NCBI GenBank assembly: GCA_009859145.1
Contig: VRVR01000024.1
Coordinates: 192,799-214,803 of the forward strand
Direction: 5' to 3'
Length of the DNA: 22,005 bases
Origin: Andalucia godoyi And28
Taxonomy: Eukaryota; Protista; Jakobida
The position numbers and the translations under genes are program-made. The notes beneath the pieces are model-generated. The model was not told the DNA's origin, did no database searches, and saw nothing but the letters and a program-made list of their open reading frames with translations. The stretch's first letter is position 1. Each line of letters opens with the position of its first letter. This document shows, piece by piece, positions 791 through 22,005 of the stretch.

Positions 791-1743
791 ATGGAAGCGT
801 CCTTGCTGAATTCTGCGGTTTCGACTGCATTTCTCGTCGTGTCTCGAGTGTACTACTCGCTATTCGAGCGAATGCTGCATTCGTATGCCCCGATTTCTGC
901 AGTCTTCCGGAACACTTCGGCTGCGAATGTGGTGGTCGGTCGCTGCTGTTCTTTTTGTAAATATTTCTGTTTGCGGGAAGGTGTGGAAGCATGGCCGTCA
1001 CTGTTCGTAAGCAGCTGCTTGTTTGTGGAGCTTCCCTTTGTGTGCGGTTTTTATATTCTAAATATTTAATTTCAAATGTATCTTTTTTTTTTTTTTTTTT
1101 TTGTTTTCTTTGTTGCTGTTCTTGCAAGAGAAGTTGTCCGTCTTGCGAGAAGCGACTGTTTTGCCAGCCTGCAAACAGTATTTTCGAAATCAAAGCGGAT
1201 CGGGCGCAGAGGTACGAAAAAGCGAGCGAGGAAATGGATGATGAATTTCTGGCTGCTCTGAGTCAGCTTTCCGACACGGATTTTCAGATTGTTCGTGACT
1301 TTGTGTTTGCACGAAATCCACATGAACAAAGCAATGCGCAGATGTCCGCGGAAGCAGCGAACAACACCAGTGCAACTGAGTATTTGTTCTCGCTTGTGCG
1401 TCGAGATCTTGCCAAGGCCAAGAAAATGGAGCATCAGCTGACAACGCTCTTGACCGATCAACAAACTCAGATTGACCAGCTCATGGCACGATCACGGCAG
1501 CTTGAATCGGAGTCCTATCGCAAAGATGAGCATATCGTGCACGTCGAATCCATGCTTCAGCAAGCCGAGCAAGCTTCCACATCCGTCCATAAGATTCATG
1601 GAATGGTCGATGCAGCACTCACCGAGGCCAAGAAGCTCGATCACCGTGAAACTGTCGTTCAGAAGCAAGCCGCGGAAATCGATCGGCTGCAAATCCTCGT
1701 GAGTAGCTTAACCAACATGATCGAAAAAAGCTCCCACTCTTGA
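791..1743 (+). CDS. Coiled-coil protein of unknown function, probably spliced (exon 791..1006, intron 1007..1128, exon 1129..1743; about 276 aa)
   Basis: GTAAGC donor at 1007, long poly-T/pyrimidine tract, AAG acceptor ending at 1128. The splice joins ORF 791..1069 in phase 0 to the frame of ORF 991..1743. The C-terminal part (from ATG 1234) is helical and heptad-like. The 5' exon structure is uncertain. Confidence 0.55.
1007..1128 (+). other. Spliceosomal intron (122 nt)
   Basis: GTAAGC donor, T-rich interior, AG acceptor; phase-compatible with both flanking ORFs. Confidence 0.6.
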
Positions 1744-1984
1744 TCATCTTCGTGTCGAGCAAGCATTCATCCCTGCGGTCTGCGCATGATGAATTGTACA
1801 GCATTTTATCACACTTGCAACAAAAACCCGTCCAATTCTCCCCTGTTCAATGGCAGCAACAACGACAACGGTAGCTCCTTGTCTTATTTTTGTTTCTTTT
1901 ATTTTAATTATTAACTATTTTGTCTGAAATGTGTAATGAAAGCAGCTGGTGAGATGCGTTGCAATGAGATGCGATGAGGTTTGG

Positions 1985-2419
1985 TCAGTGATGGCCGCTA
2001 CCGTGTCCATGTTCGTCACCATGACCGTGATTTTCAAAAGGCGGTTTAAATCCCTATCCACAACCACGTAATAACCAATGTGCGGATGACATAATTAGAA
2101 AACCAGTTGCTTGCACTAAAAACACGAATCCAAACGAGAAGACAGTCCACAACAACCAAGTCAGAGCAGGGAGAAGAAAGGGGAAAATGCATACAAAAGT
2201 AGCTGCGCCATCGTGATACGCGCGATAAAACACCCAGAACCACATCATTGCGCCAAATGCCTTTCCACCGACTACATGCCAATCGGACACATGTGGAGCC
2301 TCAAACTCGCCAGCACGCGCCGACGACGAATGCGAGTGTGAGTGCGAATGGTCGCCGCGAGTAAACATTCGTGAAGAGCGAAGTGCCGATGAGGAACGAG
2401 AAAACAGATGACGAAGCAT
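1985..2419 (-). CDS. NDUFB2: NADH:ubiquinone oxidoreductase accessory subunit B2 (AGGG)-like, 97 aa; exons 2419..2195 and 2053..1985
   Basis: HVSDWHVVGGKAFGAMMWFWVFYRAYHDG matches the plant-type NDUFB2 core (W-H-x-V-x-G-K...MWFWxxYRAxxDG). Removing the GTATGC...TAG intron restores the His-rich tail GFKPPFENHGHGDEHGHGSGHH*. The Arg/Ser-rich N-terminus resembles a mitochondrial presequence. Confidence 0.85.
2054..2194 (-). other. Spliceosomal intron (141 nt, phase 0) in the NDUFB2-like gene
   Basis: GTATGC donor at 2194, TTCTAAT branch-like sequence at 2100..2094, TAG acceptor at 2056..2054. Confidence 0.85.
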
Positions 2420-2427
2420 GGTACGCT

Positions 2428-2483
2428 CAACAACAACAAAAACAACAGCAACAGCAACAGCAACAGCACCAGCACCAGCACCA
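2428..2483. repeat. Compound CAA/CAGCAA/CACCAG microsatellite just upstream of the NDUFB2-like start
   Basis: Direct reading of tandem units. Confidence 0.85.
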
Positions 2484-2779
2484 ATATATGTTTTATAAGA
2501 AAAACTAAGGATAGTAATAATATTAGTCAATGCAATGCAATGCAATTTCAAACCAGCGTTTGAAAGGTTGGAGCTTGGGAATTACTTTCAGTGGGACTGC
2601 AATTGGCACAAATGATGGAAAACGATAAAGAAAGGGAGGTTTTGTTTTTTGAGCAGTGCTTGACTACGGCAGATTGAATTCTGGGGGAAGAGGAAGGAAA
2701 GCCATGGGGAAGCCCCCGGAATGAAATCTAGAGCTGTTGCCTTTGTGGATGTGGCTTGCTGTTTATTGAATTGAAAATG

Positions 2780-5700
2780 CTATAGAAGCCTCTTGCTTTC
2801 ATCGTCGTCGTCGTGGTCGTTGCCGCCGTTGCCGTTGTTGTTCTCGCGATCAGTTTCAGTATTTGGAGACAGGGCGAAATCGGGAACGGCGACTTTGTTG
2901 GGCGGTCGGGCTCGGTTGGGTGCCGGAGCAGAGACTACAGAGGCCGTGGGATTGGAAGTGGAGTTGGCCATGGACTCCATTGCGATTGCTCGGAGATGCG
3001 CGGCACTTGAATCTCCGGTTTGAGAGACCATGGAAGCAAAGACGCCCGGAGGATTCATGTTCAACAAGATTCCTGGCATGCCAGTTTCGACGATTCTTCC
3101 ACCGTCCATTACAATCACACGGTCATAGTCTACAATCGTATTCAGACGATGTGCAATGGTAAGAATTGTGCAGTTTGAAAACTCGGCTCGGATTGTTTTC
3201 TGGATCAAAGCGTCGGTGTCGCCATCTACCGAGGCTGTGGCTTCGTCCAGGACAAGGATTTGTGCACTGCGCAGCAGTGCTCGAGCAAGACAGAATAGCT
3301 GACGTTGCCCAGTAGAAAAGTTGGCGCCATATTCCATTACAGGAGCACAGAGCTTCAAAGGCAGCTCCGATACAACCAACTTCAAATGGGCACGCTCCAG
3401 CGCCATCCAGATTTCGTCATCGGTGTGCTGATCAAAGGGATCCAGGTTCGAGCGCACCGTTCCGGAAAAGAGAAAGGGATCCTGCGGGATGATGCAAACT
3501 GCGCGGGTACGCAGAGTCTCCAAATCAACTCGTGAAATGTCAATGCCATCGATGGAAATCGTCCCTGCCTGCAACTCGCAGAATCGAAACAGCGCAGCAA
3601 TCACACTGGACTTTCCCGCACCAGTACGCCCCACAATACCAATCTTCTCACCACCGCGAACTTGCAGAGATACGCCCTTTAGGATCGGATCTTGGTCATC
3701 CTTGTACGACATGTAAACATCGTCAAACTCGACCGATCCAGAGGAAGGCCACTGTCTTTCTGCTGCCTCCTCATGGTCCAAAGAGTTCTTGCCGGACGGC
3801 TCCACTGGCACATTTTCCGCGAAATGCAGCAATCTTTCCACGGAATTCAGCTGTGCCTCAGATTCTGCAGCCAACCGGATGCACAAGTTTAAGAACGCTG
3901 TCATTGCCTGCGCATACATGAGCACGAGGCCCACCAATCCCCCGTTCAAATTCTCTCCGAAAATGATGACAAACAGTGCAACAAGACTGACAATCCACGC
4001 GGCAAGCATCTCCAAGCGAATGACCAGCCATCGTTGTGCAATTGCGAGTGCCCACGCAGCTCGCAGGTTGTTCGTCAACCTTTCGTGATTCTGGGCACAG
4101 AAATCAGCCTGCTTCCCGTACGCACGAATCGTCGCTGTCCCGCCCAATGTTTCAGAAAAATGGGTGTAAAGTGGGGTCCGCGAAATCGAGTCGAGACGTT
4201 TCAGCTCGCGTGATGAACAACGGTACAAACGCTGAAGGAAATAGTATACCCCGACCACCGGCAAAAGAATGATGGCAAAGAACGGCAACACGACACAAAT
4301 GACAATAATGAATGCAGCGAGAATCATGAACGTATTAAAGAACGCCTGCAGTGAGGGTACAAGAACATTGTCGACTGCATCAACATCCTTGGAGAACCGG
4401 TTGAGAATTCGACCCACAGGTGTGGCATCGACGAAGGACATCTTGGCCCGCAGTACTCGACTCAAGGCTTCCAAATGAAGAGTCCTGGCCGCACGCACTC
4501 CGGCAAAGGAAAACGTGAATCCCCTTACGATTTCCGACACAAACGCACCCAGTGCAAGAAGGCCGTACACCATCATGTACTGATGAACCGTCAAGTCTAT
4601 AGAATCGGTTGACCAAAAAGAGAGCCAGAGATCGATTGCGGTGCGAAAACTCTGTAGAGACAGATACAGCAGCCCAACAACGATCCACACACAGTATCCG
4701 CCGCCCGCTACCATGTAGTGTCGAATAACATGACGATCAACGGTTCCCGTCATCCTGTCTTCCACGGCAGTGAGCTTGCCTTCCGATTTGTGATGCACGC
4801 GAGGTGTTGCCATTTCACCTGAAAACGCATCGTGGGACCGGTGCGCTGACGATTCAACCGGAGAATTCTTAGTGATATCGTCGTTGGACGCACTGAATCC
4901 GGTGTGGCTAGCTAGCATGGCTGAGAGAAGGCTGCCTTGCTTTGAGGTAAGTTCTGCATACGTCCCAGACTCTACAATGCCTCCCTGATTCATCACAACC
5001 ACCATGTCTGCTCGTGAAACGTACTGCAGTTGATGTGTAACCAAACAGCGGGTTTTGCCCGAGAGTGCCCCCACAATACAATCCTCAAAGATGTGGCGAC
5101 CAACATGGGCATCCACTGCCGATAAACAGTCGTCAAGAAACAAAACGTCAGCTTCCGAGAACACTGCGCGTGCTAAGCTGATGCGCTGCTTCTGCCCTCC
5201 AGAGAGATTGATCCCGCGCTCCCCGATCTCTGTTTGATCACCGGCTGCAAACATCCCAATGTCCCGTTCCAATGCACAAACACGCAGCGTGTTTTCGTAC
5301 TTTTGTTGATTCCATTCCTCGCCCATCAGAATGTTCTCTCTTACAGTTGCATTCTGGATCCAAGCCTCTTGCGCTACATATGCTTTAGATCCGTGAACTT
5401 CCACATGTCCCGAGTGCCGGTGCATTTCTCCAAGTGCAGCGGCCAGTAATGAGGATTTTCCAGAGGCGATCGGGCCGACAATCATCACCAACGCACCTCG
5501 GGGAACTGACAGATTAATATTTCGCAGCTCGCATGGAACAGGTTCATTTTCTCGAGCCTCGTCGTCCACTATCAAATATTGCGAAGACTGCGAAGATTGC
5601 AACAGCTGTTCCTCATCTCGTCGGCTCGAAGCGGGAGAAGTGCTGCGTGTTTTTTCGTTCCAACAGAATTCTCCATCACGGATCACGACTGCAAGACCAG

Positions 5701-6922
5701 GAGCAGCAACAGCTGCGGTGGTGGCGGTGGCGAACTCCGAAGCAGCCTCGAGCTCCGACGAATCCAAGAATGCTGCAATGCGAACGGCAGCCACATGGGC
5801 ATCCGCAATAGTTGAAACAACATTTGGAAGCATCATCATGGGAAACCGCAGAATGTTGAATAGCACAAGAGACGGGAAGACGACTTCGGCAGTGAGAGCA
5901 TTTCCTAAAGCGGCATAGGTCTCAAACGTGACAAGAGCAACCAAGGTCGGAGACAGCATCAGCAATGCCATGTTTGCTGCTCGAACCAGTGTTGCCGCTC
6001 GAACCTTGATCATTTCCAAATTGCGAATACTGCTGACCTTTTGAAGGAACGACGCTTCCCAGGCAAAAAACTTGATAACGCGGATTCCTTGCATGACCTC
6101 ATTGATTGTCTTCACTCTTTTGTCCGTAAATTGCATCATTTCTTTCCGCAAACGCGCCAAGACCGTCGATACCCGTCCCTGTACTGGTAACAGCAGCATC
6201 ATCATCGCGAAACCGGCAAACATGGAGGGCCCCACAAAGATATACAGCAAAGAAAGGGCAATGAGGATCTGCAGACTTCCAGACCACGTGACATGTAGGA
6301 ATTGCGCCAATGCCTCGATCTTCGCCGTATCTAAGCTCATGAGCGTTGTGATTTCACCAATCGTCTTCCCTTGGCGAGAAGAATTGCTCAATACGAGAGA
6401 TTTCCGGTATATTGCAGACACAAGCCCAGTACGGGCATGCATTCCCGAGCGCAGAACGCGTGTAAAATACGTATTTGTCAAGCATGCTTGTATGTTCAAG
6501 ACAATAAACAGCACTGCACACCAAGTAAAGGCGGCAGTTGGATTGATCGAGTCCCCAGAAGCAGAATAGGCAATAATAGACCGAATGGCAATAGGCTGCA
6601 CAAACGTAAGAATATCGGAGAGGAACTTGATGAGCCCGGAACGAATGAACGGACCGCCGTATGCGTAATACAATGCTCGGGCAACCGAACGTTTTCCTGC
6701 GGGGTACCGTTCTGAAACTCTGGCCCACGCATTCTGGAACTTCAGTGAATTGTCCTCTGGCTTGTCCTTCTTGGACAAGTTTGCAAGATCTGGCTCTTCA
6801 AGTGGCCGTCGTCGCCCAATCCATATTAGCGGCGTGATGTACGAGAAAAACATTCGCCCAAAAAAGCCGCATCCATCTTCTGAAAATGCTTTTTTCTCGC
6901 TTTTCAGCTTGGCATTGGTCAT
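2780..6922 (-). CDS. ABCC (MRP-type) transporter, short form TMD1-NBD1-TMD2-NBD2 without TMD0, about 1380 aa, intronless
   Basis: NBD1: Walker A GPIASGKSS, signature LSGGQKQR, degenerate Walker B LFLDD. NBD2: GRTGAGKSS, FSTGQRQL, ILVLDEATASVD. The lasso-like start FFGRMFFSYITPLI...RPLEEPDL follows the probable ATG at 6922; the upstream in-frame extension is AT-rich and low complexity. Confidence 0.95.
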   Translation of the reverse strand: MTNAKLKSEKKAFSEDGCGFFGRMFFSYITPLIWIGRRRPLEEPDLANLSKKDKPEDNSLKFQNAWARVSERYPAGKRSVARALYYAYGGPFIRSGLIKFLSDILTFVQPIAIRSIIAYSASGDSINPTAAFTWCAVLFIVLNIQACLTNTYFTRVLRSGMHARTGLVSAIYRKSLVLSNSSRQGKTIGEITTLMSLDTAKIEALAQFLHVTWSGSLQILIALSLLYIFVGPSMFAGFAMMMLLLPVQGRVSTVLARLRKEMMQFTDKRVKTINEVMQGIRVIKFFAWEASFLQKVSSIRNLEMIKVRAATLVRAANMALLMLSPTLVALVTFETYAALGNALTAEVVFPSLVLFNILRFPMMMLPNVVSTIADAHVAAVRIAAFLDSSELEAASEFATATTAAVAAPGLAVVIRDGEFCWNEKTRSTSPASSRRDEEQLLQSSQSSQYLIVDDEARENEPVPCELRNINLSVPRGALVMIVGPIASGKSSLLAAALGEMHRHSGHVEVHGSKAYVAQEAWIQNATVRENILMGEEWNQQKYENTLRVCALERDIGMFAAGDQTEIGERGINLSGGQKQRISLARAVFSEADVLFLDDCLSAVDAHVGRHIFEDCIVGALSGKTRCLVTHQLQYVSRADMVVVMNQGGIVESGTYAELTSKQGSLLSAMLASHTGFSASNDDITKNSPVESSAHRSHDAFSGEMATPRVHHKSEGKLTAVEDRMTGTVDRHVIRHYMVAGGGYCVWIVVGLLYLSLQSFRTAIDLWLSFWSTDSIDLTVHQYMMVYGLLALGAFVSEIVRGFTFSFAGVRAARTLHLEALSRVLRAKMSFVDATPVGRILNRFSKDVDAVDNVLVPSLQAFFNTFMILAAFIIVICVVLPFFAIILLPVVGVYYFLQRLYRCSSRELKRLDSISRTPLYTHFSETLGGTATIRAYGKQADFCAQNHERLTNNLRAAWALAIAQRWLVIRLEMLAAWIVSLVALFVIIFGENLNGGLVGLVLMYAQAMTAFLNLCIRLAAESEAQLNSVERLLHFAENVPVEPSGKNSLDHEEAAERQWPSSGSVEFDDVYMSYKDDQDPILKGVSLQVRGGEKIGIVGRTGAGKSSVIAALFRFCELQAGTISIDGIDISRVDLETLRTRAVCIIPQDPFLFSGTVRSNLDPFDQHTDDEIWMALERAHLKLVVSELPLKLCAPVMEYGANFSTGQRQLFCLARALLRSAQILVLDEATASVDGDTDALIQKTIRAEFSNCTILTIAHRLNTIVDYDRVIVMDGGRIVETGMPGILLNMNPPGVFASMVSQTGDSSAAHLRAIAMESMANSTSNPTASVVSAPAPNRARPPNKVAVPDFALSPNTETDRENNNGNGGNDHDDDDESKRLL

Positions 6923-7489
6923 TTCATGGAGCACATTCAAACGAAAACCAGCCGCGGCGACAGAATAATTTTTATTATTATTAGAAAACCAAAGAGAAGA
7001 ATGATGACGTATGGAGAATTGGAAAGGAGTAGAGGAGTGTGGGAAGGTCAATGTGAGTTTTTTTATGTCCCCGTCAATTGTTTTTGGAATTCTGCATGAC
7101 AGAAAAACACGCAATGGGACGATCCTCGATTGCTCGCACTTCGGGAACGTCGGGGCGGTGGGTGTTTGGACGACAAGACAGTCCTGGTCGCAGATTGGCA
7201 ATGGACAGAAGAAAAGACCGGAGCTGCAAGTTCGGCAAAAACGATACGCTTTGTAGGAGCAAAATCTTTTCGAAGTGCGAGCTGCGTGTGTAAGCAGAGT
7301 GCTCCGGAACGGAAAGTGGCAATTCTGCGATGCGCCTGCGGTTAAAAATGGTGGCTGTACGGAGGCTTGAAGGTCTGAAGGCGTACAGACCACCAGAAGG
7401 ACGAGCACTGCATGTGAATACAACAACAACGATTCTGTCGGCAGACGTGTGATGTCTCTCCCAGTTCTTACGCAGTTGCTGGAATTTAG

Positions 7490-8332
7490 ATGGACGCTTA
7501 TCAAAAGTTTCCGGAGTCGGGGTCGCAAGCCTGCATCGTGTATCACGACCAATCGATAGCGCCACTGCCCTCTCCTGCAACCCGCAGCACATGGGACTTT
7601 GATCCTCAGCGCCTGCCTCTAACTTCTGCCAAGGAAAGAATGGTTCATGCTCGCGAATGGGTGCGACGCGGGCCGCATATCATGCTTGCCATTGGAGTTA
7701 GCAACATGGTATCAGTGATCACTGCAGGTGCAGAAGGAGCGGAGTCCCTGGCGATCGCCCACGGAACCTGGTGTGCATTGTTGATCGTTCTCGGTTGCTA
7801 CACATTCTTCACAGGAAAACGCAAGCGAATCGTGATGCTGACAAATGAACGACTGGTCTTTCGGGAGATGTCTGCTTACTGGGGCCTCAATCCGAAGCAC
7901 GACAGCGAAACGACACTGCGCATACGAGACGTGTCTGCAGTGGATGTGGCCTCGCGGTGGATCAACTTTTTGCTTGTGATTGCTCTTCTTTATCTCATGG
8001 CCGGATTCTTCACGTTCACCTCCCTGGGAAATGCAGCAACCATGAATTCACTAGTATACGGTATCTTGTTCTTGGTGGCGTACATCCTTATTGTGTTCCG
8101 CTTTCCGTCCTACAATGTGGTTGTTTCAACGACGCTAGGAAGCGCATGGGACTACTCTATAAAGGTCCCCTTTCGATCGGCCGATGACGCATTTGCGTTC
8201 GCAGATATGGTCAAGGCACTCCAAGAAGAGCTTTGCTGCCACCCAACACTTGTCGATTTCCTCCATCCTGTCTCAAAAACAACAGCTGTGACCGGTAATC
8301 ATTCACTGCCCCAGGTGATGTCCACCCTTTAG
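7490..8332 (+). CDS. Multi-pass membrane protein (about 4 TM, 280 aa) with bacterial-type PH-like segments
   Basis: ATG-initiated 280-aa ORF with two hydrophobic hairpins. IVMLTNERLVF...LRIRDVSAVDV resembles the bPH family pattern. Confidence 0.75.
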   Translation: MDAYQKFPESGSQACIVYHDQSIAPLPSPATRSTWDFDPQRLPLTSAKERMVHAREWVRRGPHIMLAIGVSNMVSVITAGAEGAESLAIAHGTWCALLIVLGCYTFFTGKRKRIVMLTNERLVFREMSAYWGLNPKHDSETTLRIRDVSAVDVASRWINFLLVIALLYLMAGFFTFTSLGNAATMNSLVYGILFLVAYILIVFRFPSYNVVVSTTLGSAWDYSIKVPFRSADDAFAFADMVKALQEELCCHPTLVDFLHPVSKTTAVTGNHSLPQVMSTL

Positions 8333-9879: not shown

Positions 9880-10431
9880 ATGGTAACATTCTTTTGTGAA
9901 GCATGTCAGTCTTCGGTTCGAAAGCCGTCTTTGCAGAAGCACATGCAAACTTGCCGAGGCGCTTGGAACTTTTCGTGTGTTGATTGTGCGAAGGATTTTG
10001 ATGGAAATACAGTTCATGCGCATTCTACATGTGTTTCAGAGGCCCAGAAATACGGACATTCGAAAGGAATTGTAAGAGTACCTCCGTCGCAGAACACCAC
10101 AAACAATAACATCAATAAGAACAATGTGGATGCAAATTCAAGAAAAAGAGATGCTCCAGGAGACTCTCCAAGCTCGGATTCCTCCCTCTCCTCCTCCTCG
10201 TCGTCTCTCAAGAAGAAATCAAAGACTGTGGGTGTGCAGAAGAGTGCGAAGAAAGTCATTCAAGAAGAAGTGAAAAACTGCTTGGCAAAGGATGGAGCGA
10301 TGGACATGTGTGCGTTGATGGACAAGATTGCGTCTGTTCGCGAGACAGTTGGCATGCCAAAATCGAAATTTGAAAAGAAAGCGCAGAGGATCATTTTGAA
10401 CAAGTTCAAGGTTGTTGTCCACCACAAATAA
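9880..10431 (+). CDS. LYAR: LYAR-type C2HC zinc-finger nucleolar protein, 183 aa
   Basis: MVTFFCEACQSSVRKPSLQKHMQTC...SCVDCAKDF...AHSTCVSEAQKYG matches the tandem LYAR zinc fingers; basic Ser-rich linker. Confidence 0.9.
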   Translation: MVTFFCEACQSSVRKPSLQKHMQTCRGAWNFSCVDCAKDFDGNTVHAHSTCVSEAQKYGHSKGIVRVPPSQNTTNNNINKNNVDANSRKRDAPGDSPSSDSSLSSSSSSLKKKSKTVGVQKSAKKVIQEEVKNCLAKDGAMDMCALMDKIASVRETVGMPKSKFEKKAQRIILNKFKVVVHHK

Positions 10432-10482: not shown

Positions 10483-11334
10483 TCACGTCACGTTGCAGGG
10501 AATGCTTTCTCGTATTGGAAACGATTCTTCAAACGAAAAGCCAAGGTATCGCACTCCGGTGACGACCGTGATGCTAACCGAAACGGATCGCTCATGCGCA
10601 CAATTTCGCCACACGTCGTAAAACTGCAGTCCTCGCTTTTCCGAGTCAATCTGGATGGCATACCTTCGCCCTTCCTTGGCAGGAATGATGACGGCACTCT
10701 TGATATAGTCAACGAGAGTGACTCCTGTCGTGACGTCCACAACGTGCAGAGTGAGGTCCTGGATTTCAAATGCCACAAAGTTATCATTGCCCACGTCCAT
10801 GGAGAAATCAAGAGCGATGCGCACTCCGTAAGTATTGAGAGCAGGATAACGAGATAACTCAAGGCTGGGAACATCCACGAACACATCTTCAATCTTCGGA
10901 AATCGAGGAAACAAAAAATACAGCATCAAAACGATGCTAGCAAGCGAGAAGATCATCCCTGCAAAGAAAGTGCAGACAAGTTTCGTTTTCTTCCATCGAA
11001 AACGTAGGCGTTTTTCCAGCAAATACTCGTCCAAAGATCGATCTTTGCTGTGGGGATCAATACCGGGCACATGCGCCACGATGTCGTCTCGCGGACGACA
11101 TTCGCATATCGTCGAGTATGTGCTCTGCGCCACGACGCCGTAGGAAGGTGCGTCGAGATTGCTCACTAACGCGGCCCGACGTGGATGCACGTCCACAAAT
11201 GGTCTGCTGTGCGGTGACGGTGACGGTGACGGTGACGACGATGGCGATGATAATGATGTCGCACGGGACTCTGCAATGGTTTCCGCCACTTCGGAAGGAC
11301 TAGAGGGTTTCTCGATCTTGCAAGATGAACGCAT
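10483..11334 (-). CDS. TMEM106/LEA_2-like type II membrane protein, 283 aa
   Basis: RLRFRWKKTKL, a TM helix, YFLFPR, then a beta-rich domain containing NDNFVAFEIQDLT and a terminal Cys. These parallel TMEM106B RLRPRRTKL, FFLFPR and NNNYYSVEVENIT. Confidence 0.75.
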   Translation of the reverse strand: MRSSCKIEKPSSPSEVAETIAESRATSLSSPSSSPSPSPSPHSRPFVDVHPRRAALVSNLDAPSYGVVAQSTYSTICECRPRDDIVAHVPGIDPHSKDRSLDEYLLEKRLRFRWKKTKLVCTFFAGMIFSLASIVLMLYFLFPRFPKIEDVFVDVPSLELSRYPALNTYGVRIALDFSMDVGNDNFVAFEIQDLTLHVVDVTTGVTLVDYIKSAVIIPAKEGRRYAIQIDSEKRGLQFYDVWRNCAHERSVSVSITVVTGVRYLGFSFEESFPIRESIPCNVT

Positions 11335-11377
11335 TTTTCACCTGTTGCTTGTTCTCTCCCCCCTCCTCCTGGTAATG

Positions 11378-12002
11378 AACTAATGGCCACTGAGACGGCT
11401 TGGGATATTCCAGAATACTTGTCTACTTCAACACAAGTGTGAGTATTCAGACAGAGTAAAGGCGGCGAGACCGCCGATCGTCTCTCACTACAAGTGTGTG
11501 AGCTGCTGGTTGCATCGTGTGGACTTCGATTAACGATGGATGCGACGTTCATCTCTTCTCCCCCATCCAACAAGACGTTTTTTTCGCGCTCTATTCTGAG
11601 CGAACCCATAGAATCCCCCCTTGCACTGCGATAGGCAAATGTGATGTGGCACTTCACGTTCCCATGCAACTGCCGGGGTCGATCGGAACGTCTGCTCGTA
11701 TTGTTATTGCAAGAAATTTTTCCGGTGCAGTTCTGAATTGCGTGAGTTCGTACGCTCGTGATGAATAATGAAAAGGAGAGTAACTGAAACATTGGCTGGA
11801 ATTGTCGTGCAACCACACCGAGGGAGTTCAGAGCCAGCTCCTGCCTTTATTTTCATACGAGAGTGTTCCGAAAGATCAGCACTGCTATTCGCTCAAGAAC
11901 CGCAGAGCTTCCGAAAGTGCATCTTTCTCAGTAAGATTTGAATCTCGGAACTTGCAGAATGAAGCGTCGTAGAGCAAAGAATGGGTTCAGTGGCCATTAA
12001 AC
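11378..12002. mobile_element. Candidate MITE-like segment or paired promoter motif (13-bp perfect inverted repeat)
   Basis: TAATGGCCACTGA at 11381..11393 and TCAGTGGCCATTA at 11987..11999, with AAC on both flanks (11378..11380 and 12000..12002). Confidence 0.3.
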
Positions 12003-12306: not shown

Positions 12307-14161
12307 ATGCTTCGTCGTTTTGGATTATCCACGCTTCGTCCATCGATTCGACCTGTTTTCCAGCGTTCTTATCATCCTTTTCTCTCCGAAGCTTCGTCAA
12401 ATGTGATTGACGGAAGCGTCGATACGTCCTCGGAAGCATACCGCAAGAATTACGCATACAACCACGGGCTTGCGCAGACGTTGCAGCAGCGGATCGCACA
12501 CGTAAAGCTTGGTGGAGATGAAAAAGCAAGAGAGAAGCACGTCGAAAGAGGTAAACTGCTTCCACGACAACGTGTCGAATTGCTCCTCGATCCTGGTTCG
12601 CCGTTCCTCGAGCTTTCTCAGATGGCTGCGTACAACGTGTACAATGAAGATGTCCCTGCAGCTGGAATCATTACAGGTATTGGAAGAATCCATGGGTATG
12701 TCGCTTGCAAAAAGCAAACTCGACATCAAATTTGTGTTTTTTCCCCCTTTTTTCTTTCTTTTCTTCTTCTTCTTCTGTTGCGTCAACGTTTTTTGTTTAC
12801 TGATGTTTTGATTTTTTTATTTTCTTCTTCTTTTGACTAGACGTGAGTGCATGGTTGTTGCGAACGATGCGACCGTTAAAGGAGGTACGTACTATCCGTT
12901 GACGGTGAAGAAGCATGTTCGGGCGCAAGAAATTGCGCACACAAACAACCTTCCCTGTGTTTACTTGGTCGATTCCGGTGGAGCAAACTTGCCGAACCAG
13001 GCAGAAGTGTTTCCTGACCGCGATCATTTTGGCCGGATTTTCTTCAACCAGGCCAACATGTCTTCTGCTGGAATTCCGCAGATTGCTGTGGTGATGGGAT
13101 CGTGTACTGCCGGTGGAGCATATGTTCCCGCGATGGCCGACGAATCTGTAATTGTTCGCAAGAACGGAACGATCTTTTTGGGAGGCCCTCCTCTGGTGCG
13201 TGCTGCAACTGGAGAAGTTGTGAGCGCAGAGGACTTGGGCGGTGCAGATTTGCACTGCAGAACATCCGGTGTTACGGATCATTATGCATACGACGACCGA
13301 CATGCATTGTACCTGGCGCGCCGCATCGTTTCCAATCTCAACACATACGGCCAGTCTGGTAAGAAGGTGTTTGATATGCGCCGCGATTCCGAGGCTCCGT
13401 TGTACGACGCGGCAGAATTGTACGGAGTCATCCCACAGGACGTCCGCCAGCCCTACGACTGCCGAAAGATCATTTCTCGTTTGGTTGATGGATCTCGGTT
13501 CGATGAATTCAAGGCGATGTACGGCGATACGCTGGTGACTGGGTTTTCAAAGATCTACGGAATGCCGGTTGGCATCATTGCGAACAATGGCGTCCTCTTC
13601 TCGGAATCCGCCGTCAAAGGAGCGCATTTCATTGAGCTGTGTGCACAGCGCAGGATTCCGCTCTTTTTCTTGCAAAACATCACCGGCTTCATGGTTGGCC
13701 GCAAGTACGAAGCAGGAGGAATCGCAAAGGACGGAGCAAAGTTGGTGATGGCAGTTGCGTGTGCAAAGGTTCCTAAGATTACGCTCGTGACGGGTGGGTC
13801 CTTTGGGGCTGGAAATTATGGAATGTGCGGTCGTGCATATGATCCGCGTTTCATGTACATGTGGCCGAACTCCAGAATCTCGGTTATGGGTGGCGAGCAG
13901 GCTGCGTCTGTGCTTGCGCAGGTCAAACGGGACAATATTGAGAAGGCTGGAAAACAGTGGACCGCTGAAGAAGAGGAAGCTTTCAAAAACCCCATCCGTG
14001 AGAAGTACGAACGAGAAGGAGACCCGTACTACTCCAGTGCCCGACTCTGGGACGATGGCGTGATTGACCCTGCGCACACCCGCCAGATCCTTGGTCTTTC
14101 TCTCTCAGCTTGCTACAATGCACCGATTGAGCAAACAACATTCGGTGTCTTCCGCATGTGA
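12307..14161 (+). CDS. MCCC2: 3-methylcrotonyl-CoA carboxylase beta (carboxyltransferase) subunit, 569 aa; exons 12307..12695 and 12841..14161
   Basis: The spliced junction reads [26 protein letters not shown]. Also [26 protein letters not shown] and the MCCB-typical C-terminus TFGVFRM*. Arg-rich mitochondrial presequence. Confidence 0.96.
12696..12840 (+). other. Spliceosomal intron (145 nt, phase 2) in MCCB
   Basis: GTATGT donor, TACTGAT branch-like sequence at 12798..12804, T-rich tract, TAG acceptor; removal restores conserved sequence. Confidence 0.93.
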
Positions 14162-14730
14162 TCCTGCTTCTTCTCTCGTCGTCCACTCCTTTTCCTTTCA
14201 TCTCATCCAGCTCAGCGCCAGCTTTGTTCTTTATTCTCGTGTGTGCGAATTCCTACGCAATTAATTAAAATAAAAATAAAAATGATTCCAACCCATAGAC
14301 ATCGAAAATGAAAAAAGAGGAACAGGTTTTCCAGGAACCCGAAGGTCAAGCATCCTGTAGCCACGAGACACGACCTTATTTTAAAAAAATAAATAAAATA
14401 AAATAATCATTCTACAGCCTGGACCCTCAAACCAAAAAAAGGTCCGTTTTTGGGTGACAGCTTTTGACAAATGCCGACAGCATAAATTAAAATAAAAAGC
14501 CCAAAACAAATCGAGGATGTTGATGATTCTGCAGACGTTCAGTGCTTTTCGAGTGCACCATTTCCCCGTTTCCAAAATAGTCAACAACTACTTTCCTCGC
14601 ATAGTGGCATTACAAAAAAAAGAAGAAAAGAGAAGAGAGAGAGAGAGAAAAGAAGAGAACGCGCAGTTCATTGCAAAGAAGAAAGAAAAGGAGAAAAGCA
14701 GTCCTTTAGTCTCACCAGGTTGCAGCGAAA

Positions 14731-14735
14731 CACAG

Positions 14736-14764
<29 letters not shown>
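14731..14764. repeat. (CA)n microsatellite
   Basis: Direct reading. Confidence 0.9.
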
Positions 14765-14769
<5 letters not shown>

Positions 14770-14970
14770 ACTCTTTCTCGTATTGCGCTGAGGCACACTG
14801 ACTCTGTTTTTCACTGGATCCTTCCGAACGCAAAGCAGCGCTAATTTACTCAGCATTGACGTGTCTCGTTCTCTCTTCACAGCTTGGAACTCTCTCACTT
14901 TGTGCAGGTCTTCATTTTTGCTAGACGCAGCAGTAGTTTCCTCTTCTTCTTCTCTTGATTGGATATTTGT

Positions 14971-15509
14971 ATGACGCACAGGTGTTCGCTTTCCTCGCTT
15001 GTTTCTCGAGCTGGATGTGCCGAACGTCCGGATCGGATTTGCGTACTGCTGCTAAACGCGAGTGTCGATGTTGCGTATTATGTGTTGAAACGAGAAATGA
15101 AGGCATCGAATGGTTCTTCGCGACCGATGCTGGTCGACTATGTCGGAGGCGAGGAACACGCTGCAGGATCAGACTCGTCGTTTCTTGTGGTTCAGTTTTC
15201 GTGTTCGGATCCTTCAGAGCTGAACAAAATGGGCGTCTCTCTTATCAAGGACGACTATCGTGTTTTCTTGTTTGATGGTTGGGGAGACGCCTTTCTCTCG
15301 AGGATTACAGTCTCGTTTCCTTTTGTAGAACTCGATATCCCGACATCCTTGGTCCTGAGCCCCGGTACTCATGTCCCAGAGCCGGCGTTTCGCGTACTCT
15401 CGGCTGCCGAGCAAGCGCAACAGTTGCAAGTCCAAAAGGACCTGGAAGATCAGCTGAAGCTCAGAGGCGCACACGCGTACGCGCAGACTCAGGAAAGCAT
15501 GCAGATGGT

Positions 15510-15548
<39 letters not shown>

Positions 15549-16212
15549 AGACTCGTTTCCAATGGAATTGGAGAATGACACTGGGAATGTGAACCAGGAC
15601 GGGAGCGGCGTCAAGCACAGCGAGCAGACGAAGGAGAGTATGAGGGAGAGTGAGGTTGCCGGTTGTTTGGCTGTGTGCCCTCCTACATCCCGAAGATCTT
15701 CCGCAGAGAAGCCGCCTGTTCCCCCTCAGCGGTTGCCCAATAGCTCGGCGACTCCTGGAAATAGCGCAGGTCTTAGCGGAAGCTTCGGAGCAGGCTACAT
15801 GTTCAATCATAGTTGCATCCAGAGTAGTGGGAGTTTGGTGGGTGCTTCACCGCCGATGTTTCAGTCCATATCCAACCCTATTGATATCCCGTCCTCCAAT
15901 TCGTCTTCGCAGACCACGGACGACTGTATACAGACGCCGCCGTCGCCGTTTCTGATGCGTTCGCCGGCCTCCGTGTCCAAACTCAAAGAAAAGCTCCGGA
16001 GGAAAGTGAGATGGTCTGATGAGGAGGACCCAACATCAAGCGATGACATTGATGCAATCTCAAATGGAATCCGAGACATGGTACAAAAGCAGTCCATGAA
16101 GGTTCGTGGACCTGCGCTGAAGTCCCACAACGTTGAGCGATTTTCAAAATCTGCTGCGCTCGAATTCCAGTCCTACATGACCGCCAAGAAAACCATCACC
16201 AATAACTCTTAG
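14971..16212 (+). CDS. Protein of unknown function, about 413 aa: N-terminal alpha/beta region, poly-Asp tract, S/P-rich region, RVxF-type motif
   Basis: Long ORF (first ATG 14971; alternative 15097). (GATGAC)6 at 15511..15546 encodes D12; RKVRW at 16000..16014. Confidence 0.8.
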
Positions 16213-16286
16213 CACCCGGTATTTGTGGCCAGCTGAGCATGCTCCAAGTATCGAGTGCCTTTGGACCGCACACGTTTGTTTATAGT

Positions 16287-16322
16287 GCTGCCTTTCCGCT
16301 GCCTTTCCGCTGCCTTTCCGCT
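16287..16322. repeat. 11-bp tandem repeat (GCTGCCTTTCC)x3 plus GCT
   Basis: Direct reading, downstream of the stop at 16212. Confidence 0.9.
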
Positions 16323-16621
16323 CCCACCTTCCGCGTTCGAAAAATTTCACCACGTGCACCCTCCGTTCTTAACCTCTCTTTCAACATGCGCTGTACATAT
16401 ATTATTGCACATTGTTCATACCGATGCCAGCCTCCAATCTCATCCTCCTTATCACTTCACAGTATTTTGTAAAGATCTCCATCGATGATCGAGCATTCTG
16501 CAGTAGCAGTTTGATGCATTTATCCAACAGTAAAGCCTACAACAGTAGATTTTTTCAGTATGGATGCAGCTGAAAAAGAACAAGGATACGCTCCGATTGG
16601 AAAATTGATTCGCTTCCTACG

Positions 16622-16925
16622 ATGGGGCAGCTGTTGTTTCTGTTAGAATACGCCAACGACTGTTCCATGCCCGACGGTGCTGTTCAGAGAGCTCTGGATG
16701 CCAGGGGTGTGCGTAAAGACAGACTGGCCCTCTCCACCGGGACCCATGATCTTGATAATGTGCAATGTACACGTAAACATTTCCATTTTGTCTAAATGGA
16801 TATTCACTCATGTCAATCAAATCGATTTGGGGCACGGCTCTTCAAGTGCACCACCTCAGCCACTTGCTGTAGTATTCGCGGACCGCGTGCGTCCCTCTCG
16901 GCTTGCCCCAGGTTTCCTTGAATAG
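16622..16925 (+). CDS. Possible spliced micro-gene, about 67 aa (exons 16622..16772 and 16873..16925)
   Basis: MGQLLFLLEYANDCSMPDGAVQRALDARGVRKDRLALSTGTHDLDNVQCT joined through GTAAAC...CTGTAG (100 nt) to LFADRVRPSRLAPGFLE*. Competes with a minus-strand model. Confidence 0.3.
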
Positions 16926-17084
16926 TCCGCCGTTCCTTTTTGGCCATTCCTTCCGCTCGTTCTCACGCAAGCAGCACGCGTTCTGCAGCATTCCTTCTGG
17001 CTTTCTTTGCATTTATTTAACTCATTTTTCCTGTTCTGTAGTTTGGCTTTCCCACCTTCCTCTCTCGTCGTAGCAGAAAAAAAA

Positions 17085-17204
17085 ATGCTGTCTATTCGTC
17101 TTCGTTATCCGATTGCAGCACAGTATGTGTTTGTTTTCTCAATCCGCTTATTGAATTGAAAACGGAGAATGTTTTTCTCACGAGTGTTTGTGCTTACTTA
17201 CCTT

Positions 17205-17263
<59 letters not shown>

Positions 17264-19456
17264 TATATTGTGAAAATAATAATGCATGCGCTCGTGTTTG
17301 CATGACGTGGTAGATTTGCGACGGAGAGATGCTTTTCGACTTCTTCTTCGAAGCTTTTTGATCGGATTTTGGTTGCCAATCGTGGAGAAATCGCATGTCG
17401 AGTGATGCGAACCGCTCGGAAGATGGGGATTGAGACAGTTGCCGTATACTCGGATGCAGATAAGAATGCAATGCACGTCCAAATGGCAGACCATGCTGTT
17501 CGCATCGGCAGTCCTCCTGCGCGAGAGTCGTATTTGCTTGCAGATCGCATCATCCAAGCTGCAAAGTCAACTGGCGCACAGGCGATTCACCCCGGATACG
17601 GATTCTTGTCGGAGAATGCAAAGTTTGCAGAGCAGTTGGCTGCAGATAAGCTGGTTTTTGTGGGGCCTCCTGCTTCTGCAATTCGTGCAATGGGCTCGAA
17701 ATCCGAGTCGAAACGGATCATGGAAAAGGCAAATGTACCGTGCGTCCCGGGATACCATGGAGACAACCAGGATCCAAAGTTTCTGGAAGAAACTGCGAGG
17801 AAGATTGGGTATCCCATTATGATCAAAGCAGTGTCTGGAGGTGGTGGAAAGGGAATGAGGATTGTGCATACACCCGATCAGTTCCATGAAATGCTCGAGT
17901 CTGCAAAGCGCGAAGCAAAGGCCTCGTTCAATGACGACGTAGTGCTGCTGGAACGGTACATCTCAGAACCCAGACACATTGAAGTCCAGGTTTTCGTAGA
18001 CAACATGAATAATGCCGTGTACTTGTTTGAACGCGATTGCTCTGTGCAGCGTCGCCATCAGAAGATCATTGAGGAAGCTCCTGCACCAAACCTGTCGCCC
18101 GAACAGAGACGCCAACTTGGACAGGCCGCAGTGAGCGCTGCGCTGGCGGTGGGATACCGCGGCGCAGGTACCGTGGAGTTCATCTTTGACAGGACCACGG
18201 GCCAGTTCTTCTTTATGGAGATGAACACCCGCCTCCAAGTTGAGCACCCAGTCACGGAAATGATTACGGGTACGGATTTGGTGGAATGGCAGCTGCGTGT
18301 GGCAGCCGGTGAGCGTTTGCCAAAGCTGCAGGAAGATCTCTCAATCCGCGGACATGCGTTTGAGGCTCGGGTTTACGCAGAGGACCCTGCTCGTGGCTTC
18401 TTGCCGCAGACAGGAAAGATCGCGTATCTGCGCACACCAGAGAATCTAGGCTACGCGCAGAACGCCAATGTGGACAAGACGGTCCGTGTGGACACCGGTG
18501 TTCGTGAAGGAGACACTGTTTCCGTGTTCTATGACCCGATGATTGCAAAACTTGTGTGCTGGGGTCCGTCGAGGTCCGAAGCGCTTCGAAAGTTGAACTC
18601 CTGTTTGAACTCGTTCCGAGTCGTTGGAGTCAACAACAACCTTGGATTCTTGCACTCTTTGGGGTCACACCCGTCTTTCCAGGCCGGGGATGTGTGGACT
18701 GGATTCATTCCGCAGCACGAGAAATCTCTGTTTGCGGATCACACCCCACCATATGCACAGGCTCTTGCCGCTGCCGGGTCGGTGATCTTGGACTCTTTGA
18801 AGGCTGCCCGGCAGCTGAACAAGGTTGATCCCTGGAATTCTTCCGCATTGCGCGATTTTCGTGTGAACCCAAATGCAGCTCCCATGGAGTATCCCATCAC
18901 TTTCAAGAAGGAAGGCCACAAGAACACGACGTGCAAGGTGACAGCTGGTCTTGGAAACTCATTTGACGTTCACTCACCGCATGGGGATTTTGCGTTTGCA
19001 GTTTCTGCTATCACGCCGGATGCGTATAATGAGTCTGCTGTGGATATCACTGTGCAAGTGACCAACAAGAAGACCGAGGCAGTGAGTCAGCTGGAGGCTA
19101 CGATTGTGCGTCATGCGGATGGCCGTGTATTCGTATTCCTGCCAAATACACCAGAGATTGCTTTCAACCTGGACATTCCCCAGTACGATGCCGCATCACT
19201 GGCTGCGTCTGCTGGCGGACGGAGTGCCCTTGGCACGCTGATTTCGCCGATGCCCGGCAAGATTGTCAAGGTGTTCAAGACCCAGGGCACGACTGTGAAG
19301 AAAGGCGACGCTATCGTCATTCTTGAGGCAATGAAGATGGAGCATGTGGTTCGTGCGCCGTTTGACGGTCTTTTAGAGCAAGTCGTTGCAGTGGAGCGTG
19401 AGGGGCAGATGGTCCAAGAGAAATTCTTGCTTGCAAAAATCACTCCTTCTGCATAA
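17085..19456 (+). CDS. MCCC1: 3-methylcrotonyl-CoA carboxylase alpha (biotin carboxylase + BCCP) subunit, 726 aa; exons 17085..17122 and 17314..19456
   Basis: ILVANRGEIACRV, HPGYGFLSEN, GGGGKGMR, EMNTRLQVEHPVTE, MCC-type GHAFEARVYAEDP, biotin site EAMKM. The spliced N-terminus MLSIRLRYPIAAQFATERCFSTSSSKLFDR is presequence-like. Confidence 0.95.
17123..17313 (+). other. Spliceosomal intron (191 nt, phase 2) in MCCA, containing (TG)28
   Basis: GTATGT donor at 17123 and TAG acceptor ending at 17313; the join is in frame with ORF 17369..19456. Confidence 0.88.
17207..17262. repeat. (TG)28 microsatellite
   Basis: Direct reading. Confidence 0.95.
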
Positions 19457-19472
19457 CACGCATCATTCTTGC

Positions 19473-19507
19473 TTCTGTTCTGTTCTGTTCTGTTCTGTTC
19501 TGTTCTG
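19473..19507. repeat. (TTCTG)7 pentanucleotide repeat just 3' of the MCCA stop
   Basis: Direct reading. Confidence 0.95.
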
Positions 19508-19656
19508 TGATTATTAATTTTTTTAATTTTTTTTTTTTGGTTGTTTTTAATCCGTTCCGCTCATGATCACTTAATACATCCTATCCCGAAAATCCTTTGT
19601 ATGTTGCTCTTTGTCAAAGATAAGAAGAGTAAAAAAGAAAAGAAAAAAACACGTTG

Positions 19657-21489
19657 CTATGGTCGCGAGCGAGGTGGACTCTCCACCAAATCCTTCAGCT
19701 TCTTTCTCGGAGAATGGAGAATACTCTCAAATTCCTCCACAGGAAACGACGAACGCAAACTGCTTCTTCTGGGAGAGATGTTCGGCGAGCGAGGTTCTCC
19801 AGTCACGTTCGAAACCACCGAGTCCAACACGGAGAACGGATCCACCTCTTTGTAACTGCCACGGCGACCCTTTTGCAGCTCTCGATTCACTCTTTCAACC
19901 AACAAGATACCCTCTGGAGTTCTCTTGTCAATATATGCAATCCGCGACACCACATCCGGTCGCATTTTGTTGATCTTCTGCAAATCCTTCGTCACATCAA
20001 CCCTGCTTCTCGCAGAAACCGTCACAATCTTTCCGACCTTTGGAAGTCCTCGCTTCTTTGGCTCAATCGACTCACTCTCCCTCTTTCCGGGCGACTCAGG
20101 GGCTGCGGCGTCCCGTCCGGGAGACATTTTGCCAGCAGTTGCAGACGCTCTGAGCGTGCTGGCATTTGCGGGCGTTCCCGGGACCACCGCTGTTGAAGAA
20201 GAAGAAGAAGATGCACCAGCACTAGCTGGAGGAGGAGGAAATGAAACGACATTCCTTACAGACTTGGCTGCCGCGGCCTGCGTTTCCGTGACGGTGGACA
20301 GGTTGAGAAGCGGAATGATCACCTTTGCTGGGGACTTGGGTCGCGGATTTTTCATGAATGGAGAGTACGCAACCTCCAGCACCGGTCGAATGTCTGTCAT
20401 TGTCAAATGGACTTGAGAGTTCGGTTCGGAAAACGGGTACGCTGTGGATGCATCTGTGTGCAAGACTTCTTCTACACGTGCGATTTCCGGATCATCCAAA
20501 TCTGAATCCGAGTCTCCATCTCCATCCAAACCCCCATTCCTATCATCGCTATTATTGTTTTTGAAACTACCTCTGCTTCCCATCCTGTTGGCAGGCATTG
20601 CCGTTGCGGACGTGCCACCTGTTCTTGACGAATCCGGTCCAGCCATGCCCAGTTCATAGGCACGCCACGGCTCCTTGATGACAATCACCTCATTTGTTCT
20701 CTGCGTCAACAAGAGGTCTCGAGCAGCATCAAACTGTTTTTCCAGTTGCGCTGCCCTGCGACTCTTGGTTCTCCACATCTCCGCCGCTCTGTACCAAGCC
20801 GCGATCGAGTTTCCCACGACAAGCAGCTTTCGGAGCAAATGTAACTTTTCCTGCTTCTTTTTCGCGACAAGAATGGCAGCTCGGCGAGCAAGTTCTTCCG
20901 GATCGTTATCTAGTATCGAAACTCTCTTCACCGGAGCACCACTGCTGTCTTCCAGCCGCTTCATCTGCTCGACATCCACGGCGGAAGCTCTCTTGGTCCC
21001 AATCGGTTTGAGATACTGGTCAAGCTCCGCATCGTCAAATTTGAACGAAGACTTGACTGCATCTTCGTCCAAATGCTGCATAATGATGTGAGTCGGAAGC
21101 AAATGCCCTTTTCCCGCTTCAAACACCTTCTGTATCTGCTCTGGCTTCAGCTCCCCCGCGTTCATAAGCAAGCCCCGAAGCGCTGTCGACATCTTCTTCT
21201 GTTCAACTGCAGCATCATTTTCATTATCGTGACGCCGGTGCAAATGATCGTACTTTTTCAACACTCCCTTGATCTTCTGTTCCTCCTTTTCATCCGCTAC
21301 TGACTTCCTGGTCTTGTTCATCGACAGCCGTGTCTGAGACGCGCTCATTCGAATCAGCGACTTTCGGCGCTCCTCTTCAAACTTTACAAACCGCTGTTCC
21401 GATCGCCGAAACGTCCAGTTGATCTCATCGATCTCCGTCTGAATATTCGAAATAAGTGCCGCTGTATCTGTCCGCGATGTCGAGCTCAT
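19657..21489 (-). CDS. Protein of unknown function, 610 aa: helical/coiled-coil N-terminal half, IQ-like motif, disordered S/P/R-rich C-terminal half
   Basis: Long ATG-initiated intronless ORF; IAAWYRAAEMWR at 20805..20770. Confidence 0.85.
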   Translation of the reverse strand: MSSTSRTDTAALISNIQTEIDEINWTFRRSEQRFVKFEEERRKSLIRMSASQTRLSMNKTRKSVADEKEEQKIKGVLKKYDHLHRRHDNENDAAVEQKKMSTALRGLLMNAGELKPEQIQKVFEAGKGHLLPTHIIMQHLDEDAVKSSFKFDDAELDQYLKPIGTKRASAVDVEQMKRLEDSSGAPVKRVSILDNDPEELARRAAILVAKKKQEKLHLLRKLLVVGNSIAAWYRAAEMWRTKSRRAAQLEKQFDAARDLLLTQRTNEVIVIKEPWRAYELGMAGPDSSRTGGTSATAMPANRMGSRGSFKNNNSDDRNGGLDGDGDSDSDLDDPEIARVEEVLHTDASTAYPFSEPNSQVHLTMTDIRPVLEVAYSPFMKNPRPKSPAKVIIPLLNLSTVTETQAAAAKSVRNVVSFPPPPASAGASSSSSSTAVVPGTPANASTLRASATAGKMSPGRDAAAPESPGKRESESIEPKKRGLPKVGKIVTVSARSRVDVTKDLQKINKMRPDVVSRIAYIDKRTPEGILLVERVNRELQKGRRGSYKEVDPFSVLDSVVSNVTGEPRSPNISPRRSSLRSSFPVEEFESILHSPRKKLKDLVESPPRSRP

Positions 21490-21839: not shown

Positions 21840-21880
21840 AAGAGAGACAGAGAGACACAGAGAGAGAGAGAGAGAGACAC

Positions 21881-21920
<40 letters not shown>

Positions 21921-21930
21921 AGAGAGACAC

Positions 21931-21961
<31 letters not shown>

Positions 21962-22005
21962 CACACAGAGAGACAGAGAGAGAGAGAGAGAGAGACAGAG
22001 AGAAG
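21840..22005. repeat. Long compound (AG)n/(AGAGAC)n purine-rich repeat running to the window end
   Basis: Direct reading. Confidence 0.95.

Follow-up and report, generated by a model that had tools for sequence, protein, structure and literature searches.

The DNA analysed here (hereafter the window, 22,005 nucleotides in its full length) is taken from the nuclear contig VRVR01000024.1 of the jakobid protist Andalucia godoyi And28 (assembly GCA_009859145.1; positions 192,799 to 214,803 of the forward strand of a 329-kb contig). On one strand of it lie the genes annotated as the two subunits of mitochondrial 3-methylcrotonyl-CoA carboxylase (MCC), MCCB for the beta and MCCA for the alpha subunit, with a further gene, here called X, between them, and a convergent gene, Y, beyond MCCA (Table 1). 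From the stop codon of MCCB to the start codon of MCCA the distance is 2923 bp. The 2.9 kb of same-strand spacing given in the initial annotation is thereby borne out, but the gap holds a real gene, so the two MCC genes are linked rather than adjacent.

Table 1. Features of the window, in positions counted from its first nucleotide; the MCC genes and their direct neighbours come first
Feature	Position	Strand	Description
MCCB exon 1	12307..12695	+	presequence and N-terminal part of carboxyltransferase subunit; codons 1-129 plus 2 nt
MCCB intron	12696..12840	+	145 nt, GTATGT...AG, phase 2
MCCB exon 2	12841..14161	+	remaining carboxyltransferase domain through stop codon
Gene X	14971..16212	+	413-amino-acid orphan open reading frame (ORF) between MCCB and MCCA
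MCCA exon 1	17085..17122	+	presequence start; 12 codons plus 2 nt
MCCA intron	17123..17313	+	191 nt, GTATGT...AG, phase 2; contains (TG)28 microsatellite at 17207..17262
MCCA exon 2	17314..19456	+	biotin carboxylase, linker (BT) region, biotin-carrier domain with AMKM biotinylation motif, stop codon
Gene Y	19657..21489	-	610 amino acids, convergent with MCCA; no Pfam match
NDUFB2-like complex I subunit	2054-2551	-	annotated in the record
ABCC-type ABC transporter	2780-7552	-	
ORF	7490-8332	+	one of several without known domains
Protein with LYAR-type zinc finger	9880-10431	+	PF08790, E=5.7e-13
ORF	10483-11816	-	one of several without known domains
11-mer repeat, three copies	16287-16322		after gene X
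(TTCTG)7 microsatellite	19473-19508		just past the MCCA stop codon
AG microsatellite, ~81 copies	21841-22003		end of the window

The spliced products of both genes, of 569 amino acids for MCCB and 726 for MCCA, are 100% identical to deposited A. godoyi proteins (KAF0852631.1, ANDGO_08227, our P0001, and our P0121, respectively), the names on record being those of mitochondrial methylcrotonyl-CoA carboxylase, beta subunit and alpha subunit. The same lengths, and introns of 145 and 191 nt, are listed for the RNA-Seq-checked models in Table S1 of Gray et al. 2020 (PMC7050145), together with mitochondrial-targeting scores, computed in silico, of 89 for MCCB and 54 for MCCA. At its N-terminus, MCCB is ~34 amino acids longer than its 535-amino-acid bacterial homologues. 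Subunit identities, presequences, phase-2 GTATGT introns and same-strand order, as originally read from the letters alone, all match the published models and the Pfam and structure matches described below; the observation is correct as to gene identity and structure.

MCCB shows a full-length match to the Pfam family Carboxyl_trans (PF01039, E=1.1e-159, residues 78-560), and its best match among solved structures is human MCCC2 (E=2.6e-254, 848 bits). Compared with other carboxylases, it scores 826 bits against the MCC beta subunit of P. aeruginosa, 476 against the geranyl-CoA carboxylase beta subunit and ~260 against PCC beta. In MCCA, the Pfam domains Biotin_carb_N (PF00289), CPSase_L_D2 (PF02786, ATP-grasp), Biotin_carb_C (PF02785) and Biotin_lipoyl (PF00364) were found, the translation of the biotinyl domain contains the motif EAMKME, and human MCCC1 is the best solved-structure match (680 bits, E=3.9e-203). 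Pfam did not report its domain BT_MCC_alpha (PF21139) in the Andalucia protein, although a stretch of suitable length occupies that place and the alignment with MCCC1 runs across it, from residue 20 to residue 710. NCBIfam has no MCC-specific model, so that source gave no sharper assignment. Judged by these matches, the assignment of the two genes to the alpha and beta subunits of mitochondrial MCC is secure in identity and in predicted function. Subunits of this enzyme are imported separately into the mitochondrion and then assembled into the holoenzyme; the alpha subunit carboxylates its own biotin with ATP and bicarbonate, and the carboxyl group is then passed on by the beta subunit to 3-methylcrotonyl-CoA, yielding 3-methylglutaconyl-CoA in the breakdown of leucine.

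The linkage is not confined to A. godoyi. Its closest MCCA among 5.8 billion proteins (P0122; 61% identity by BLASTP, 64% by pairwise alignment) is encoded by an intronless gene on a 14.6-kb contig of an uncultured relative from JGI metagenome 3300042934 (L003), which was compared with the A. godoyi locus by tblastx. L003 begins partway through MCCB, the last 247 amino acids of which are 81% identical, and continues with a homologue of X (1362..2048, E=6e-12, colinear, with a weak N-terminal match), a GluQRS-like gene on the minus strand, and MCCA; past MCCA follow a homologue of Y (5805..7736, minus strand; 30% identity over its full length, E=9e-67), an extra diacylglycerol-kinase-like gene and a homologue of gene Z, the one next to Y in A. 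godoyi. The metagenome contains another, independent contig (L013, 96.9% nucleotide identity to L003), on which 490 amino acids of MCCB are encoded ahead of X, with the GluQRS-like gene and MCCA following in that order. Because two contigs of the relative have the same order, the MCCB-X-MCCA linkage is, on this comparison, older than the split of two well-diverged species. For the same reason, the joining of two unlinked genes by an assembly error, which would also have to have happened within a 329-kb contig of a curated assembly, is refuted and can be set aside with near certainty. Absence of the linkage from close relatives had been named at the outset as a sign of chance adjacency; in the closest relative available, the linkage is kept. 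Collinearity extends, however, to all five genes common to both lineages (MCCB, X, MCCA, Y and Z), and conservation therefore says little about selection for the MCC pair specifically.

A third relative is represented by a 4.1-kb Logan contig of run SRR15116022 (L002; genome GC content 60%) with an intronless MCCB, the closest MCCB relative, that is 75-77% identical and, in the MCCB tree, sister to that of the L013 organism; within 1.36 kb downstream of it there is neither X nor MCCA, on a contig too short to decide. When metagenomes were scanned with an alignment of MCCA's variable BT region, just two distant loci came up (39-41% identity), which told nothing about synteny, and the known L003 was missed; a further homologue search with this alignment gave only three weak matches (one named bacterial and two metagenome proteins). 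One of the two distant loci (L006) has a divergent carboxyltransferase on the opposite strand.

Gene X contains a poly-Asp tract, 13 residues long, at 15510-15552, and its C-terminal part holds the conserved sequence KVRW(S/A)DEE...SMKVRGxALK, the start of which presumably looks like an RVxF motif, by which proteins dock to protein phosphatase 1. No Pfam domain is significant in X, the sole match being CDC45 at E=0.0068, far short of the cut-off, and by tblastn X does not resemble enoyl-CoA hydratase. Among 1.84 billion representative proteins searched, a single one matched, 78 amino acids long; since the gene calls on the contigs of the relative give this same length to the C-terminal part of X, the match is probably a fragment of X from there. 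A decayed hydratase, or a member of a known family, was considered as the identity of X and is ruled out by the missing Pfam domain, the missing tblastn similarity and the single protein match. When X is compared between L003 and L013, the two variants of the relative, its codons show 10 synonymous and 3 nonsynonymous differences. Given the homologue at the same position and the mostly synonymous differences, X is a real and constrained gene, and the single match among the representatives makes it a lineage-restricted orphan. It is flanked by spacers of 810 bp (MCCB-X) and 872 bp (X-MCCA), long for a genome in which closely packed gene pairs are on average 217 nt apart (PMC7050145).

Two observations concern the spacers of the relative. 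The region between MCCB and X (L003 744-1373, compared with L013) is only 1.3% different, against 2.1-2.9% in coding regions, where most changes are synonymous in the two genes that allowed a count (the MCCB C-terminus and X); the low divergence may reflect conservation of an untranslated or regulatory element, or an exon that has escaped recognition. The additional gene between X and MCCA (L003 2102-3139 and L013 2849-3712, both on the minus strand) resembles a bacterial-type tRNA glutamyl-Q(34) synthetase (GluQRS/YadB); its score for NCBIfam NF004315, 245.6 bits, is just under the cut-off of 250. It may be an insertion, or a horizontally acquired gene, in the lineage of the relative; no remnant of it was found at the A. 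godoyi locus.

Neighbour-joining trees of both subunits were built from Kimura-corrected distances, with 200 bootstrap replicates for MCCA and 300 for MCCB. In the MCCA tree, A. godoyi and its relative are sisters (100%) inside a group that includes every named eukaryote (fungi, amoebozoans, Capsaspora and animals), and this group is split from every named bacterial sequence, the bacteria being the most similar ones, with 100% bootstrap support. In the MCCB tree, A. godoyi clusters with L013 and L002 (100%), and the union of this cluster with human MCCC2 and an uncultured eukaryote has 94% support (283/300); alphaproteobacterial, Geobacter, Pseudomonas and Mycobacterium sequences stand apart. 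Within the limits of such trees, both genes look vertically inherited, which argues against recent horizontal transfer. The initial annotation had allowed for a bacterial arrangement acquired in this way, a suggestion that the separate trees do not sustain, as both place the genes with their eukaryotic orthologues.

A recent transfer of a partial bacterial liu operon into the Andalucia lineage, with introns and presequences gained later, would account for the bacterial-like gene order and for the raw identities of MCCB, which are 72-75% to Azospirillum and Geobacter proteins (75% to Azospirillum) and 67.5% to human MCCC2. The higher identity to bacteria is likely due to slow evolution of the enzyme in Andalucia and in bacteria, and the ranking of best matches, with Azospirillum nearest, was dropped as evidence of transfer once the trees had been built. 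Besides the trees, such a transfer would have to be reconciled with the best matches of MCCA, which after the relative are fungi, amoebozoans and animals, with the spliceosomal introns and presequences of both genes, and with their GC content, which is like that of the surrounding window. We regard it as very improbable.

Together, the window and the extended locus L001 cover the 10 kb before MCCB and the 4.7 kb after MCCA; neither in these nor in L003 were genes or remnants of genes for IVD, enoyl-CoA hydratase (ECH) or HMG-CoA lyase detected by annotation and tblastn. A mini-cluster of the leucine pathway with IVD, AUH and HMGCL in the flanks is thus not borne out by a search of ~22 kb. In A. 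godoyi, the genes for IVD (_07931), the methylglutaconyl-CoA hydratase (_03296) and HMG-CoA lyase are not linked to the pair. The only other annotated mitochondrial gene within these limits is the NDUFB2-like one, and no non-repetitive words of at least 9 bases are common to the stretches that precede the two MCC genes. What stands of the description as an operon-like metabolic mini-cluster is the physical linkage of two pathway genes within 2.9 kb; its operon-like character is argued against by the unrelated, constrained gene in between (two genes in the relative), the long spacers, the separate presequences and introns, the lack of a third pathway gene nearby and the lack of a shared upstream motif. 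Long spacers and a separate intervening gene likewise argue against a polycistronic operon, as far as the arrangement of the DNA can indicate.

None of five other eukaryotes checked shows such linkage. Within 10 kb of MCCA, MCCB is missing in Catenaria anguillulae, Blastocladiella emersonii, Dictyostelium purpureum and Spizellomyces punctatus, and in the uncultured eukaryote that encodes P0086, MCCA is missing within 6.5-10 kb of MCCB, which is adjoined by a PI3-kinase gene (all confirmed by tblastn). In humans and Arabidopsis, the MCCA and MCCB genes are unlinked. Other neighbours of MCCA were seen in some of these genomes: in both blastocladiomycetes it adjoins a gene for HMG-CoA lyase (HMGL-like), divergently in Catenaria (L004 8524-12492) and convergently in Blastocladiella (L094 10001-13351), and in D. 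purpureum (L007 6536-12508) it lies directly downstream of the gene for the glycine-cleavage P-protein, which is mitochondrial and has no relation to the pathway.

As a bacterial baseline, the 80 bacterial loci best matching Andalucia MCCB were examined, 72 of them with at least 4 kb of downstream sequence. MCCA lies downstream of MCCB, on the same strand and within 6 kb, at 63 of these 72 loci: directly adjacent at 19, with one gene between at 38 (a hydratase gene at 36) and across a larger gap at 6. Upstream of MCCB, MCCA was found at none of the bacterial loci scanned. The likening of the beta-before-alpha order to liuB/liuD accordingly proved apt, this being the dominant bacterial layout. 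Geobacter pickeringii (L012) has the full order IVD-MCCB-hydratase-MCCA-lyase (liuA-B-C-D-E). In the alphaproteobacterium Rhodospirillum centenum (CP000613.2, L011), no MCCA lies within 8 kb after MCCB, and the hydratase gene is found 4.4 kb downstream among unrelated genes, in departure from a liu gene order that is otherwise nearly universal. Neither the tight packing of liu operons, with a hydratase gene between or direct adjacency, nor their IVD and HMG-CoA lyase flanks (in the window and L001) were found at the Andalucia locus.

The arrangement of one gene between beta and alpha on a single strand mimics the commonest bacterial form, and the pair could accordingly descend from a liuB-liuC-liuD block of the mitochondrial ancestor that moved to the nucleus as a whole before the last eukaryotic common ancestor, was kept only in the Andalucia lineage and had its hydratase gene replaced by X. 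Such a descent would suit the unusual number of bacterial traits reported to be retained by A. godoyi (PMC7050145), and the raw identity of MCCB is highest to alphaproteobacterial proteins. It would, however, demand many independent losses, given five other eukaryotes without the linkage in addition to humans and Arabidopsis; nothing in X points to a former hydratase; the operon is missing from some alphaproteobacteria, as R. centenum demonstrates; and once linkage is given, the match in order and orientation is a 1-in-4 coincidence. This origin therefore seems improbable.

What remains is probably an ordinary, lineage-specific linkage of two genes that we infer to be transcribed independently and whose proximity would need no selection. 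Each MCC gene would be a transcription unit of its own, with its own 5' region, presequence, small spliceosomal intron and AT-rich 3' region. The order MCCB-X-MCCA would have arisen within the Andalucia lineage, or been retained only there, before the split from the uncultured relative, and has since persisted within a collinear stretch that runs from MCCB through X, MCCA and Y to Z.

Several points weigh against this explanation. On the assumption of ~8,700 genes (the highest gene ID seen is 08608), the estimated chance that a named pair lies within one intervening gene of each other is p ~4.6e-4, or ~2% per genome if ~50 two-subunit enzymes are considered. Order and strand agree with the bacterial liuB...liuD layout, and the order has survived while gene Y diverged to 30% identity. 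In fungi, genes of leucine catabolism have been clustered repeatedly (Aspergillus, PMC4117967; Blastocladiomycota), and selection for linkage within the pathway is therefore plausible. Finally, the trees are of the neighbour-joining type only, and that of MCCB includes just two eukaryotes outside the Andalucia group.

An alternative is that the linkage has been selected, closeness aiding either co-regulation (by a shared chromatin neighbourhood or balanced dosage of the subunits) or co-inheritance; the two separately transcribed genes would then be a minimal eukaryotic metabolic pair comparable to the leucine clusters of fungi. The low chance probability speaks for it, as do the independent clusters of leucine-pathway genes in Aspergillus and Blastocladiomycota and the survival of order and orientation in the relative despite its extra spacer gene. 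Yet the conserved block includes the unrelated genes X, Y and Z, so that no constraint specific to MCC is needed; the upstream regions have no motif in common; IVD, AUH and HMGCL are not in the neighbourhood; and in the sister of the relative (L002), MCCB is followed by neither X nor MCCA within 1.36 kb. The independently selected linkage raised in the initial annotation hence keeps in its favour the persistence of the pair in one diverged relative, which general collinearity accounts for as well, and we consider selection a serious but rather unlikely explanation of a linkage that ordinary, lineage-specific neighbourhood more readily explains.

Scans for tRNAs and Rfam families found no RNA genes in the window, and a tandem-repeat scan found microsatellites only. 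An ABCC-type transporter gene, present upstream of MCCB, also lies within a few kb of the MCC genes in Catenaria (L004 4-5429, minus strand) and Blastocladiella (L094 13885-17815, plus strand). It was considered as a shared neighbour, but identities of 25-45% are at the level of paralogues in a large family, and its presence is treated as coincidence.

To our knowledge, linkage of the genes for partner subunits is rare in eukaryotes. The MCC genes of A. godoyi have been annotated and published, and their linkage appears to be undiscussed, judged by the text of the genome paper, which does not mention it (PMC7050145). It bears on the origin of metabolic gene clusters and on the survival of bacterial gene order after transfer from the mitochondrial ancestor to the nucleus. 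A relic of an operon, if true, would be direct physical evidence for endosymbiotic gene transfer in operon-sized pieces; the evidence points instead to a real and fairly old, ordinary lineage-specific neighbourhood that is neither an operon nor a relic of transfer. As such, Andalucia adds one case to the linked primary-metabolism genes of eukaryotes. Its importance would rise sharply only if other deep-branching eukaryotes had the same arrangement, and its main value is that of a cheap test case for whether a linkage is ancient or co-regulated.

Four known systems invite comparison. (i) The human holoenzyme of MCCC1 and MCCC2 (PDB 8j4z) has the same domain architecture as the Andalucia proteins, likewise with presequences, and is the best structure match for both subunits; the human genes sit on different chromosomes, and the difference from Andalucia is thus one of genomic arrangement only, not of the enzyme. 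(ii) The bacterial liu operon encodes the same two subunits, with beta upstream of alpha on one strand and commonly one gene between. In bacteria, however, the genes are co-transcribed, gaps measure tens of bases, the gene between is an enoyl-CoA hydratase, and IVD and HMG-CoA lyase genes flank the pair, whereas Andalucia has spacers of several hundred base pairs, an orphan gene between, and an intron and a presequence for each MCC gene. (iii) In Aspergillus nidulans, the nuclear genes for both MCC subunits are linked as in Andalucia, in a cluster with ivdA (mccB AN4687, ivdA AN4688, mccA AN4690), each gene of which is transcribed separately (PMC4117967); locus tags of A. terreus are consistent with the same leucine cluster (PMC7842363). 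Unlike the Andalucia pair, which has an unrelated gene in its middle and no third pathway gene nearby, this cluster includes ivdA, and up-regulation of ivdA and mccB together has been reported (PMC4117967). The two linkages arose independently. (iv) The association of MCCA with the HMG-CoA lyase gene in Blastocladiomycota is, like that in Andalucia, an independent pairing of two leucine-pathway genes in a eukaryote, but it joins alpha and lyase rather than alpha and beta, and the genes are directly adjacent on opposite strands. These blastocladiomycete pairs add to a picture in which genes of leucine catabolism appear to cluster repeatedly in eukaryotes.

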